A DNA stretch of 64,000 nt, taken from contig OZ251251.1 in assembly GCA_965240325.2 (NCBI GenBank), positions 620,001-684,000 on the forward strand, given 5' to 3'. The first letter of the stretch is position 1; each line of letters begins with the position of its first letter. Shown here in pieces: positions 14,259-24,542 of this stretch. The position numbers and the translations under genes are program-made. This stretch comes from Rebecca billardiae RCC1528. Lineage: Eukaryota; Protista; Haptophyta. Below the pieces are notes generated by a model that saw only the letters and a list, made by a program, of their open reading frames with translations, ran no database searches and was not told the DNA's origin.

Positions 14259-17200
14259 TCAGTGCCCCGGACTCCTGAGCACGTACTTGAGCGGCACGCG
14301 CCGCCAGACCGCGCGCCCGTCCTCCTCGTCGTCCGCAAACGCGACGAGGTAGTCGCGCTCGACCTGTCAGGGCGGGGCGCGTCAGCGGGGCCCGCCGGCA
14401 GGGGGCGGGCGGCCGGCGGCAGGCGGCGCGGCACATGAAGTCAAAGGCGATGAGCATTCGGGCGGCTCGGGGGTGTCGCGAGCGGGCGCGCGCCTGCCGC
14501 AGGGGCTGCGCCGTTCGCGGGCCACGGCGCGCCGCGCGCACCCGCAGCGACGGCGGGCGCACGACCGTCGCCGGGTAGAAGACGGTCGAGTCCGGCCACA
14601 TCGCCAGCACCGGACTCCCGAGAGGGTACTCATGGAGACCTGCGACGAACACGGGCGGCTGCGACACGGGCAGCGGCAGGCAGTGCCGCGCGCCCACCGT
14701 GTGCACCGCGCTGCCCGGCGCCGCGTCCGGGTCGTCGTCGCGGACGACGTACGCGGCCACACCGGACTCGGCCGCACCGGACTTTTGCGCGGACTGCACG
14801 GTGGCGAGGATCCACGCAAACTCGCCGTCGGCCTCCCGGACTCTCGCCGCCACCTTCGCGCCCGGACTGAGCGCCACGCCCGGCGGCAGCGGCACGGCGG
14901 CGCAGAGCGGCGCGGTGGGCGTGCGCCCGTCCCGGCCGTCGGCGGTCGGCAGCCGCGCGTCTGCGGGGTACGCTGCGGCCCACGCGACGACGTCGTCGCC
15001 GGCGGCGGCGGACGCGGCGGCGGCGCCGCCGCCGCCGCCGCCGCCGTCCTCGGCGGCAGCGCCGCCCAACGCGCCGCCGCCGCCGCTCGGCGCCGCCGGC
15101 CTGGGCGCGGCGTGCGGCGGCTGCGGCCGTGCCGCGCCGCCGCCGCCGGCCGCCGCCGCCGCCGCCGCCGCCGCTTTGTTCTTCAGCTTGGGCACAGCGG
15201 CCGCGGCGGGCTTGGCGCGCTTGGGAGCCTTAGGCGGTGCGCCGCCGGGCGGCGGCGGCGGCTTCGTGGCGGCGGGCTTGGCGGGCGGCGGCGGCGCGCC
15301 GGCCGCGCCGACGCCGGGCGGCGGCGGCGGGCGCGCGGGCGGCGTCGCGCCGAGGCGCGAGCGCGCCACCTGCGGGGCGGCGGCGCGCGGCGCAGCGCGC
15401 GCGGCCGCGTGAGCGCGCGGCGCGGCGCGGCGCGGCGCGGCGCGGCGCGGCGCGCGGCGGCTGGCGCGCGGCGGCGTGGCGGGCGGCGGCGTGGCGGGTG
15501 GCGCGCTCACCAGCGGGATGTCGTCGTCGTCGTCGTCGTCGTCGTCGTCGTCGTCTCCACCGCCGCCGCCGCCGCCACCCGCACCTGCCGCCGTCGCGCG
15601 CGCGGCCGCGGCCACGGCCCTCGCCTGCTCCGCCGCGGCGGCGGCGGCGGCGGCGGCGGCCGCCGCAGCTTTCGCGCGCTTGGCTGGTGGGCCTGACATG
15701 ATGGCGGAGGGGGAGGAGGCGGCGGGTCCGGCGCCGTCGGCGGAGAGCGCGGCGGCGCCGAGCGCGGAGGGCAGCCCACCGCCAGGCGTGCCGCCGCCGT
15801 CGGCGCCCGCCGCGAGCGCCGCCGCCGGCCGCTTGCCGAGCGGTGCGGCCGGCGGCGTCGTCGCGCCGCCCGCGCCGCGCGCGCCGCGCGCGCCGCCGCG
15901 CCCGCCGCGCCCGCGGCCGCGGCCGCGGCCGCGTCCGCGTCCGCGCCCGCCGCCGCCCTCGTCGTCGTCGTCGTCGCCGTCCAGGCTGCGCACCTCCGCC
16001 GCGGGGCGGCTCGCCACTCGGCCGGACGCGGTGACGACCGTGCGCGCGCGCGCGCCCTCGCCGCCGCCGCCGCCCTCGGCGTGTTCGTAACCGCCGGCGT
16101 AACCGCCATGGCCGCCGCCGCCGCCAAGGCTGCCGCGCTGCCGCGGGTCGGCCTCGCGCAGCTCGCGGTCGATCGGCGCCTTGATCTCGTCCGTGTAGAA
16201 CGCGTCGCGCAGCACCGCGCGGTACGCGTCGAGCAGCTGCGCCGCGGCGGCGGCGGCGGTCGCGGCGGCGGCGGCGCGGCGGCGGCGCGGCGGTCGTGGC
16301 GGCGGCGCGGCGAGCGCGGCGGCGGCGCGGCGCGGCGCGTGTGAGCGGCGGGTGCCAGCGGCGCGCGGCGGGTGCGGGTGGTCCCCCCCGCCCCCCCGCG
16401 CGCGCGCGCGCACGCACGCACCTCGTTGATGTGGTCGAGCAGCGTCGCCTCGGGCGGCACCGCCCCGCGCTCGTACCGCCGATTCACAATGGCGCCCTTT
16501 TCGTAGTCGGCCGCGAGCACCGCGCCCTTGCCAGCGCGCAGATCCACCGGACTTTCGAGGGAGAATCCGGACGAGGGGCGGAGGAGCGCCTCGGCGGAGA
16601 GCTTGTGCCGGACGAAGCGGCCGACGTGCTCGAGGTGCGCGTGCGCCGACGCGTTGCCGAACGCCGCCTTGAGCTTGGACGTGCCTGCGCACAGTGCGCG
16701 CGCACACACGCGCACACACGCGCGCGCATGCGCACGCACGTACACGCGCACCCGCGCATGCGCGCGCGCACACACGCGCGCACACACGCGCAGAGGGCGG
16801 GCGTGGCGCGCGGTGAGTGCCGTGCGCGTGCCAGCACCGCCGCCGGCCGCGTCCAGCCCGCCCCCCAATTCGCCTCTCGGCACACCCGCACAGCTGCACA
16901 CACACACACACACCGCTGTGCTGCTGTGCTGAGCGCAGCGCGCGCCTCGGCGCGGCGCCGCAGGCGCGGCCGCGCGCACGCCCGCGCGCGCGGTCGCTGT
17001 GTGTCCGCCCCCCCCCCCCCCCCCGCCCCGCCTCCACACGCACGCACGCACGCACGCGCGCACGCGCACACAGCCCACGCACACCCCGCCGCCCGGCGCC
17101 GCGCGCACCCTGCCCGAGGCACAGGTACACCGCGCTCATGTCCGCCCGAAACAAAAACTGTATGTACAGGCCGTGCTGGGTGGACTCGGAAGGGTCGGCC

Positions 17201-23200: not shown

Positions 23201-24542
23201 GGCGGGCGTGCCGGCGGGCGGCGCCGCGCCCGGCTCCGGCGTTGGGCCGCCGCCCTCCGCCGCCGAAGCCGCCGCCGCGGGGTGCGTCGCGGCGATCACG
23301 CGCTCGACCAGCATGGCCGCCTCGTTGAACGCATCCAGCTTGCCCGCGGCGCGCTTCCGCTCAAAGTGACTCAGCCGCTGCGCCGAGAGACGCCCGTCCG
23401 CCTCGATCTCCGCTGGGCTGAGCCAGCGGGAGTGCACGTGCGCGCGGCCCTGCGGGTGGGCGGCGCGCGCGCGGGGCGAGGCGCGGGGCGGGGAGGGTTT
23501 GGGCGGCGGCGGTGGGCCGGGGCGGCGGCAGATGGGCGGGCGCGCCGGGCAGCGCGGGCGCAGGCAGGCAGGGGCGCGGCGGCGGCGGCAGCAGCAGCGG
23601 CGCACGCGCGCGTGTGCGCGTGCAACGCGCGCGTGTGCGCACGCAGCACGGGCACACGCACGCACGCGCGCATACACGCACGCACACGCACGCACACGCA
23701 CACGCACACGCGCGCGCTAGCTGCACGCGCGAGCGCGCGCGCGTGCAGCAGCGCGCGCGCAGCGGCCGCACCTTGAACTTGCACAGGTACTCCTGTACCG
23801 CGCCGCCGCGCGCGCGGGCGCCGGGCGAGAGCGGGCCGCGCGGCGAGCTCAGCCCCGGCTCGCCCTGCACCGCGCGCCGCCGCACGTCCAGGATCTTGTC
23901 GATCGTGTGCGGCCCCTCCTCGCGCCCGGCCGGCCCGGCGCCGAGCGCCGGGCTGGGCGCTCGGAGAAGTCGGCTTGCGAGCAGCGCGGCCTTCGTGTAC
24001 GGGCGCAGCCGCTCGGCGAGCTCGTCGGGCTCCTCGTCGTCGTCGTCGTCGTCGTCGTCATCCTCCTCCGCCTCCGCCTCCGCGCCATCGTCCTCGCCGC
24101 CGCCGCCGCCGGCCGGCGCGGGCGGCTTGGGCGGCGGCACAATCGTCGCGCGCATGCGGTCCGAGTCCACGCGAAGCCGCAGCCGGACGGGCGTGGGCAC
24201 GAGGGCGCGCGGCGCGAGCGGCGGTCGTGCGGCCGGGTCGTGCGCCGAAGCGCCGCCCGCGCCGCCCGCGCCGACGCCGACGCTCGGCGGCGAGGCGGGC
24301 GCGCCGCCCGCGCCGCCGCCGCCGCCGCCGCCGCCGCCGCCCCCGGGCGGCGGCGGCGGCGGCGCGGCGCCGAGGGCAGGCCCGCCGGCGCACGCGGCAG
24401 CGGCGGCGGCATGCCCGCCAGGTAGGTGCGCATCTGCGCCACCGTCGTCGTCGGCGCGCGCGCGCTTCCACGCGGGCTCGTCGTCGCCCACATCCCCGGC
24501 GGCGTCGTCCCAGCCGCGTCCCTGCAGCATGCCCTCCGCCAT
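14259..24542 (-). CDS. CHD6-9/Kismet-type chromatin remodeller fused to an McrB-N (DUF3578)-like domain and an SGF29 tandem Tudor; 12 exons, ~2,480 aa
   Basis: Exons 24542-23772, 23449-22971, 22818-22294, 21889-21664, 21426-20926, 20635-20501, 20339-17625, 17277-17109, 16684-16422, 16236-15511, 15369-14542 and 14363-14259 splice in frame (all GT-AG except one GC-AG). Motifs: chromo1 [22 protein letters not shown]; chromo2 [22 protein letters not shown]; LRDYQLEG; [11 protein letters not shown]; [10 protein letters not shown]; LTGTPLQN; [10 protein letters not shown]; [11 protein letters not shown]; [10 protein letters not shown]; [19 protein letters not shown]; SANT-like [24 protein letters not shown]. 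Confidence 0.9.
14262..14875 (-). other. SGF29-type tandem Tudor domain at the C-terminus of the CHD gene
   Basis: [66 protein letters not shown] is the characteristic SGF29 double-Tudor pattern. Confidence 0.88.
16210..17741 (-). other. McrB N-terminal (DUF3578)-like modified-cytosine reader domain within the CHD gene, split over 4 exons
   Basis: Spliced sequence: [109 protein letters not shown]. This matches the DUF3578 pattern S-x-G-x-G-x-W-A-x-V-P-W..G-x-Y-x-x-x-L-F-x-x-D..V-Y-L-x-L-x-Q-G..Y-E-x-G-x-I..Y..P..L..L..Y. Confidence 0.85.

Follow-up and report, generated by a model that had tools for sequence, protein, structure and literature searches.

A CHD-family remodeller gene of the haptophyte Rebecca billardiae predicted to combine a bacterial-type McrB-N domain with an SGF29-type tandem Tudor

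Could a motor that moves nucleosomes have taken over the methyl-DNA sensor of a bacterial restriction system? The question is raised by a locus of the haptophyte Rebecca billardiae RCC1528, which lies on contig OZ251251.1 (assembly GCA_965240325.2) in a stretch of 64,000 nucleotides (positions 620,001 to 684,000 of the forward strand), referred to here as the window, whose numbering is used throughout. On its minus strand, between positions 24542 and 14259, we predict from sequence alone, by combining frame maps with splice sites, a gene of 11 stop-free exons with a product of 2527 aa. With moderate confidence we read it as one gene for a CHD-family remodeller that carries two additional readers, a domain of the MrcB_N family and an SGF29-type tandem Tudor, through which the motor would be coupled to DNA methylation and to histone H3 di- or trimethylated at lysine 4 (H3K4me2/3).

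A Pfam scan of the raw minus-strand open reading frames (ORFs) revealed Chromo (E 3.3e-6), SNF2-rel_dom (E 7.9e-24 and 2.7e-10), Helicase_C, HTH_CHD1_Hrp3 (E 1.3e-8), MrcB_N (E 7.7e-18, from a single 56-aa exon) and SGF29_Tudor (E 4.4e-15). ORF length alone proves nothing here, because the DNA is very rich in GC (71.5% in the whole window and 69-90% per 500-nt window in the region of the gene) and long ORFs are present in all six frames. The connection between the remodeller and MrcB_N is carried by a single exon, exon 7 (20339-17625), which spans helicase motif VI through the opening of MrcB_N and ends with ...GIQLGLQ. In every 150-nt window of this exon the GC content at the third codon position (GC3) is 0.88-1.00 in the model frame, the introns having a GC content of about 0.8 that is flat over all three codon positions; at the local composition, 905 stop-free codons would arise by chance with a probability of about 2e-4. 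The last 55-68 residues of the exon, taken alone, match the start of MrcB_N in homologous proteins with 40-47% identity (E 1e-11 to 2e-18, calculated within the small set of proteins collected here). Over residues 1729-1965, which include all three intron joints, the spliced product gives an uninterrupted alignment to homologues in which the domain is contiguous (50-56% identity, E down to 1e-73), and this validates the three introns inside MrcB_N.

Since it lies in one uninterrupted exon, the predicted fusion of remodeller and MrcB_N holds independently of the splice calls, as had been maintained in an initial annotation made without database searches. The splice model built here reproduced exactly the gene start (24542), the gene end (14259) and the key exon (20339-17625) given there, and it contains the three introns placed inside MrcB_N, one of them of the GC-AG type; the domain identities read there (chromo-chromo-SNF2, MrcB_N/DUF3578 and SGF29 tandem Tudor) were upheld by the Pfam profiles. 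The proposed number of 12 exons stands only in part: 11 are needed, and a twelfth results if a candidate 141-nt GT..AG intron in exon 10 (15510-15370, CTG/GTGAGC ... CCGCAG/GTG), which is stop-free and a multiple of three in length, is removed. Whether spliced or retained, the segment 15370-15510 keeps the frame, and it may be an alternative linker. Throughout the model the splice sites are GT-AG, with the sole exception of the GC-AG intron after 17625, and the phases are consistent.

The predicted protein has tandem chromodomains N-terminal to an SNF2 ATPase in which motifs I-VI are all intact, and the gene thus apparently encodes a CHD-family SNF2 remodeller with an active motor. Among proteins of solved structure, the ATPase is best matched by CHD1 (9ear_W, E 1.9e-30), followed by CHD4 (E 1.6e-29), while the segment after the ATPase scores 65.6 bits against CHD1 versus 35.5 bits against CHD4; CHD1 is the top solved match for two exon pieces. 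The gene resembles CHD1 (yeast Chd1, human CHD1) in its tandem chromodomains, its SNF2 ATPase and the CHD-type helix-turn-helix (HTH) domain that follows (HTH_CHD1_Hrp3, E 3.9e-9), with a weak match to the DNA-binding domain of human CHD1 (4b4c_A). In contrast to CHD1, however, it gave no profile match to SANT, SLIDE or DUF4208 even at E values up to 5, and the PHD finger found in its orthologues (see below) is a trait of the CHD3/4-like subfamily II. CHD1 is therefore proposed only as the closest relative of solved structure, CHD4 following at a short distance, and we make no assignment to a subfamily.

The domain that follows the HTH region belongs to PF12102 (MrcB_N/DUF3578), the family of the N-terminal domain of McrB from E. 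coli K-12 (Bell et al. 2024, PMC11090510; Bell et al. 2020), which Bell et al. 2024 named "ADAM". The Pfam cut-off for MrcB_N is 25 bits; exon 8, taken singly, reaches 67 (profile positions 40-93) and aligns directly to residues 34-81 of 3ssc_A, and the homologues cover Pfam positions 1-181. With a profile built from 80 homologues, the spliced domain of the window obtains 219 bits (nodes 4-208 of 217) and E. coli McrB-N 38 bits. An AlphaFold2 model of the homologue P0004 (residues 88-318), calculated with the 80-sequence alignment, has a mean predicted local distance difference test (pLDDT) score of 92.7, and the top 20 Foldseek matches to it in the PDB are all EcoKMcrB-N. VIA-align superimposes the model on 3ssd_A with a Z-score of 11.5 (3.1 A, 141/155 residues); next comes 2a8e with Z 9.7, and all others have Z <=4.7. 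The likeness to McrB-N supposed in the initial annotation is thus found both in the profile comparison (Pfam E 2e-18) and in the structural one.

According to Sukackaite et al. 2012 (PMC3424535), the flipped nucleotide is clamped in EcoKMcrB-N at its phosphates by Ser38 and Trp49, and Tyr64 and Leu68 contact the 5-methyl group and discriminate 5-methylcytosine (5mC) from cytosine. The equivalents of all four residues lie in exon 8 and are identical in the window protein, so that the base-flipping pocket proposed earlier is retained; Ser38, Trp49 and Leu68 are invariant in 20 aligned homologues, and Tyr64 is replaced by Phe in one. The window domain and EcoKMcrB-N (PDB 3SSC/3SSD/3SSE) therefore have in common the Pfam family, the fold (as modelled for the homologue) and these four residues, whereas the window domain is only about 16% identical to that of E. 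coli, lacks Tyr41 and Asn43, and is interrupted by three introns. The carriers differ too: in E. coli the domain is attached to an AAA+ GTPase that has the McrC nuclease as a partner, whereas here it is attached to an SNF2 remodeller, and Pfam scans detected no AAA_5 or McrC-type domain in the gene. Because both the AAA+ GTPase and McrC are missing, the gene as predicted is not a McrBC restriction system, and only the sensor domain appears to have been borrowed. By analogy with its E. coli counterpart, the most likely ligand of the domain is modified cytosine, in the simplest case 5mC in CG, which would be bound by base flipping.

Is the architecture peculiar to this locus? When 1.84 billion representative proteins were scanned by HMMER, with the 56-aa core exon as the query, 901 of them matched at E <= 1e-3. 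The best 30 or so, with 65-84% identity over the core exon, are not of the bacterial type; according to Pfam, P0006 contains zf-CXXC, HTH_CHD1_Hrp3, MrcB_N and Agenet, and P0004 contains MrcB_N and Agenet. Classic McrB proteins, with MrcB_N (in some cases also EVE) and AAA_5, appear among the lower-ranked matches. On contigs from Tara Oceans and other marine samples, 55 nt separate the P0006 ORF from a Chromo-SNF2-Helicase_C ORF upstream of it, and on contig L001 an 84-nt GT..AG intron (L001:3776-3859) joins the CHD ORF and the P0006 ORF in frame into a protein of 2323 aa, which is collinear with the window model and shows 60% identity over 692 aa of the ATPase part. It is because of this intron that prokaryotic gene callers split the L001-type remodeller into two genes in all metagenome records. 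The intron is the only one seen in that gene (the orthologue, from a picoeukaryote, has about 65% GC); its AT content is markedly higher than that of the exons, and it falls in the middle of a conserved motif, AWTR.Q/L...GFG.

The same design was found in single ORFs. A search seeded with P0006 retrieved P0181 (1823 aa) and P0182 (1585 aa), in each of which SNF2, Helicase_C, HTH, MrcB_N and Agenet follow each other in one uninterrupted ORF, and contig L010 (64% GC) contains the design in one ORF whose probability by chance is about 2e-22. In Prymnesium parvum it is represented by a hypothetical protein of 2102 aa (KAL1519787.1, AB1Y20_023294, UniRef A0AB34JG76, here P0187), which shares a 90% cluster with P0182 and has the architecture PHD-Chromo-SNF2-Helicase_C-HTH-MrcB_N-Agenet; a comparison with the window model, domain by domain, gives 47-53% identity, with the order preserved. 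Thus KAL1519787.1 and the marine relatives (P0181, P0182, P0006/L001, P0180 and L010) have in common with the window gene a collinear series of chromo, SNF2, Helicase_C, CHD HTH, MrcB_N and a reader of the Tudor clan. As a group, KAL1519787.1 and these relatives are 47-60% identical to it in the chromo/ATPase part and 51-56% in MrcB_N, and their MrcB_N falls in the same clade. They differ from it in that they end in Agenet and many of them have in addition a PHD finger at the N-terminus, a CXXC finger inside the protein or both, neither of which is present in the window gene. These relatives are uncharacterised, and their database names are hypothetical only. Judged from these sequences, the combination of remodeller, MrcB_N and Tudor-clan reader is a conserved family, present in at least one haptophyte and in several uncultured marine eukaryotes. 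Among proteins of 498-1584 aa, a query with exon 7 gave five matches, none with MrcB_N, a search probably dominated by low-complexity words; the ESM Atlas returned bacterial DUF3578 clusters for the MrcB_N domain and only weak CHD HTH/SLIDE clusters for P0180, neither query placing the fusion taxonomically.

To what source can the domain be traced? In a maximum likelihood tree of 85 MrcB_N domains, all copies from a chromatin context, including that of the window, form one clade with a Shimodaira-Hasegawa-like approximate likelihood ratio test (SH-aLRT) support of 100, which has a long stem branch (1.03) and arises from within the bacterial McrB-type sequences; the label "eukaryote-type" in this tree reflects the accompanying domains and the contigs and is no taxonomic assignment. 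The bacterial origin claimed in the initial annotation for the methyl-DNA sensor domain is supported by this position, and the topology is consistent with the domain having been taken up from bacteria once and then shuffled between CHD, bromodomain and stand-alone proteins. In P0005 and P0016 (513 and 401 aa) MrcB_N is followed by a Bromodomain, and because their MrcB_N falls in the CHD-linked clade, the borrowed sensor appears to have been joined to an acetyl-lysine reader as well. In three proteins of about 1000 aa, P0008 (L006:9001-11979), P0019 (L007:8702-11680) and P0014 (L008:2003-4960), MrcB_N is the sole recognised domain and the C-terminal 500 aa or so have no Pfam match; their contigs are plainly eukaryotic, with a WD40/NLE gene, a Methyltransf_16+2OG-FeII_Oxy_3 gene and a gene for dynein heavy chain as neighbours. 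P0026 (1735 aa, on a 23.6-kb Logan contig), which has two MrcB_N and two EVE domains, four readers of modified bases in all, and no AAA+, sits among the bacterial-type sequences in the tree.

The C-terminal region of the predicted protein matches the tandem Tudor of human SGF29 (3me9_A) with E 4.6e-13. In SGF29 the methyl-lysine cage is formed by Y238, Y245, F264 and D266 in human numbering (PMC4589357); in the window Tudor, W is found in place of Y238, and Y245, F264 and D266 are retained. The tail thus resembles SGF29 (a SAGA/ATAC subunit, PDB 3ME9) in its tandem Tudor and in its aromatic/acidic cage, and by analogy it most likely binds H3K4me2/3. SGF29, on the other hand, is a stand-alone protein of about 290 aa, while the window Tudor is the tail of a 2527-aa remodeller and lacks the N-terminal part of SGF29. 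A search for relatives with an SGF29 tail among proteins of 643-2046 aa gave no match, and a metagenome scan with the Tudor exon yielded only one weak, low-complexity match, on L009. The window Tudor and the Agenet tail of P0006 show no significant pairwise similarity; the two tails therefore represent different families of the Tudor clan and are not orthologous.

Taken together, the gene may work as follows. A McrB-N domain, which algae would have acquired once from bacterial type IV restriction systems, sits after the HTH region of the motor and would flip a modified cytosine into its conserved pocket. The SGF29-type tandem Tudor would bind H3K4me2/3 and so restrict or enhance the action beside nucleosomes bearing it. 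The motor would thereby be recruited to DNA with methylated cytosine next to nucleosomes that carry this mark of active promoters, or its sliding would be biased there, and the pattern of DNA methylation would be coupled to nucleosome position. The motor might also serve to phase nucleosomes against methylated linkers.

Several points weigh against this reading. The fold was modelled on P0004:88-318, a stand-in that is 56% identical to the window domain. Tyr41, which intercalates into DNA, and Asn43, which contacts a base, correspond to Lys and Gly in the window domain, and relatives have Cys at the former position and Gly, Arg or Lys at the latter. The equivalent of the base-stacking Tyr117 could not be mapped, the C-terminal half giving no sequence alignment to the E. 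coli domain; a nearly invariant Tyr in ADYEKG is a candidate for it. The ligand specificity is extrapolated from a single divergent member of the family, EcoKMcrB. As to the tail, the 565 stop-free codons of exon 10 (14542-16236) are only mildly improbable at 83% GC (chance about 0.03), and a tail of the SGF29 type looks particular to R. billardiae among the sequences compared, the relatives carrying Agenet.

These points bear first on the ligand. It is conceivable, though in our judgement rather unlikely, that the fusion is real and the eukaryotic MrcB_N clade no longer reads 5mC, its members being general or sequence-specific DNA anchors, or readers of 5-hydroxymethylcytosine (5hmC), N4-methylcytosine (4mC) or a hypermodified base, so that MrcB_N would extend the linker-DNA-binding region of the remodeller instead of sensing methylation. 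The two residues lost in the window and its relatives are the sole within-duplex base contacts in EcoKMcrB, and the clade has a long stem branch. Tyr41 is not conserved among McrB-N homologues and may set specificity (PMC3424535), and EcoKMcrB-N has been crystallised with DNA containing 5hmC, 5-formylcytosine or 4mC (PDB titles). Yet the residues that contact the methyl group and those that clamp the flipped nucleotide are conserved in essentially all aligned sequences, as described above. Moreover, the sister proteins bear in the same polypeptide a CXXC finger, a known reader of unmethylated CpG, in keeping with a protein whose design centres on whether CpG is methylated.

The second issue is the tail, whose link to MrcB_N is, on the sequence evidence, somewhat weaker than that between the remodeller and MrcB_N. 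Two genes might have been read as one, the remodeller with MrcB_N ending, by way of an unseen splice, in the low-complexity part of exon 10 and a separate SGF29-like gene starting from a Met near 15697; we consider this improbable. Besides the merely mild improbability of the open frame, such a division is favoured by an in-frame Met upstream of the Tudors, by high GC at all three codon positions in 15516-15277 and by the pairing of MrcB_N with an SGF29 Tudor being found in no relative searched. It is opposed by the absence of any stop from the last helix of MrcB_N (16236-16126) onward to the Tudors, which share the frame of exon 10, by a GC3 of 0.85-0.97 in that frame along the full exon, and by the relatives, all of which bear Agenet, a member of the same clan, after MrcB_N inside one ORF; a stand-alone product would also be devoid of the N-terminal part of SGF29. 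Because the open frame has a chance probability of about 0.03, the support for exon 10 leans on this periodicity and on the presence of both domains in one frame. Finally, bacterial contamination, a pseudogene or chance ORFs, to which the GC-rich window with its long ORFs in six frames might lend colour, are highly improbable explanations that we rejected, as three spliceosomal introns in correct phase interrupt MrcB_N, every domain is intact and has its motifs conserved, the codon-position periodicity is strong, and orthologues lie on eukaryotic contigs beside dynein, WD40 and kinase genes.

The reading as a single remodeller gene distributes the domains over the exons as follows, all on the minus strand. 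Exon 1 (23772-24542) starts with MAEGMLQG, continues through an N-terminal stretch of low complexity (about 210 aa) and reaches halfway into chromodomain 1 (HTIDKILD...EYLCKFK), with a GT donor after 23772; exon 2 (22971-23449), bounded by AG and GT sites, completes chromodomain 1 and contains chromodomain 2 (Pfam Chromo, E 1.5e-6 and 3.3e-6). Lobe 1 of the SNF2 ATPase with motif I (GDEMGLGKT) is found in exon 3 (22294-22818; SNF2-rel_dom, E 7.9e-24), motifs II (DEAH) and III (LTGTPLQN) in exon 4 (21664-21889), the end of the SNF2 domain and the start of Helicase_C in exon 5 (20926-21426; SNF2-rel_dom, E 2.7e-10, and Helicase_C in Pfam), and motif V in exon 6 (20501-20635). The 905 codons of exon 7 (17625-20339) encode motif VI, the CHD post-ATPase region with HTH_CHD1_Hrp3 (about 19052-18963; Pfam E 1.3e-8), a polyQ run, a DA-repeat/acidic tract, Gly runs, a coiled coil and the first 55 or so residues of MrcB_N (from about 17792). 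The core of that domain, 56 aa with the finger loop and the pocket (...GLYIQFLF), is exon 8 (17109-17277; Pfam MrcB_N, E 2e-18, positions 40-93), and positions 96-170 (TSKLKAAFG...DHINE) are in exon 9 (16422-16684; Pfam E 2.7e-4 when taken alone). Exon 10 (14542-16236) begins with the last MrcB_N helix (LLDAYRAVL, to about 16126), continues with Gly/RG-rich and poly-Asp linkers and a Pro/Ala-rich stretch, and from about 14955 encodes Tudor 1 and most of Tudor 2 of the SGF29 type (SGF29_Tudor, E 3.4e-15). Exon 11 (14259-14363) contains the end of Tudor 2 with the equivalents of Phe264 and Asp266 (SGF29_Tudor positions 105-131) and the stop codon (14261-14259).

Three of the introns (17278-17624, 16685-17108 and 21890-22293, minus strand) consist mostly of short GC-rich tandem motifs, which in two of the introns include CACGCGCGGTGCA-like units; before 21889 there are long (CA)n/(CACACG)n tracts, and the intron repeats yield long spurious ORFs in all frames. 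On the plus strand a gene of the PNP_UDP_1 phosphorylase superfamily (24740-25456, Pfam E 1.1e-29) runs divergently from the remodeller gene; the two starts are about 200 nt apart and may share a bidirectional promoter. Because this gene begins near 24740, a remodeller start at 24542 is plausible and there is no room for a 5' exon with a PHD finger. Directly downstream of the remodeller gene, the minus strand contains an ORF of 1587 codons (9020-13783, 86-89% GC) without a Pfam match.

How would such a remodeller fit into the methylation biology of algae? In E. huxleyi, Micromonas and Aureococcus, methylation associated with DNMT5 is reported to occur only in the linkers between nucleosomes, and the enzyme itself is reported from haptophytes generally (PMC9246332; Hoguin et al.). 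It is this linker methylation that makes the connection to nucleosome phasing attractive. We put forward, as a tentative proposal only, that the algal remodellers with CHD and MrcB_N are the missing effector between DNMT5-type CG methylation of linkers and the phasing of nucleosomes in haptophytes, pelagophytes and prasinophyte-like picoalgae. McrB-N, placed directly after the region that binds linker DNA, would sense a methylated linker and stop or bias sliding, so that nucleosomes would be kept off methylated DNA, and the Tudor, Agenet, PHD and CXXC modules would tune the activity at promoters. Other SNF2 motors tied to cytosine methylation are DDM1/HELLS with CDCA7, and DNMT5 with its own SNF2 ATPase (PMC10538959). 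In the former the reader is a zinc-finger partner, whereas in the latter the methyltransferase itself is fused to the motor, and neither is known to use a base-flipping McrB-N domain.

In the literature searched, in which subscription journals are thinly covered so that an earlier mention is possible, we found no description of eukaryotic MrcB_N proteins. The census of McrBC systems by Bell et al. 2024 explicitly excluded eukaryotes (PMC11090510), and a 2022 survey of CHD proteins annotated only a fixed list of Pfam domains known from model organisms. The initial annotation knew of no description of the architecture, a statement that needs to be narrowed: the fusion of remodeller and MrcB_N recurs, unnamed, in other algae (KAL1519787.1 and ORFs from Tara and JGI), while the SGF29 tail was encountered only here. 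What appears to be new is a CHD remodeller with a type of reader domain not yet described in eukaryotes, in a family that already stands unnamed in public databases.

The eukaryotic readers of 5mC known to date are mainly MBD and SRA domains and certain zinc fingers. If our reading is true, eukaryotes would have in McrB-N a new class of methyl-DNA reader beside MBD and SRA. Material for testing is at hand in the annotated orthologue from Prymnesium parvum and in a domain of about 235 residues for which a high-confidence structure is predicted. On our reading the family would also be a clear case of a prokaryotic defence module domesticated into the regulation of chromatin, and a concrete candidate for the unexplained connection of DNMT5-linked CG methylation in linkers to the positioning of nucleosomes in algae.

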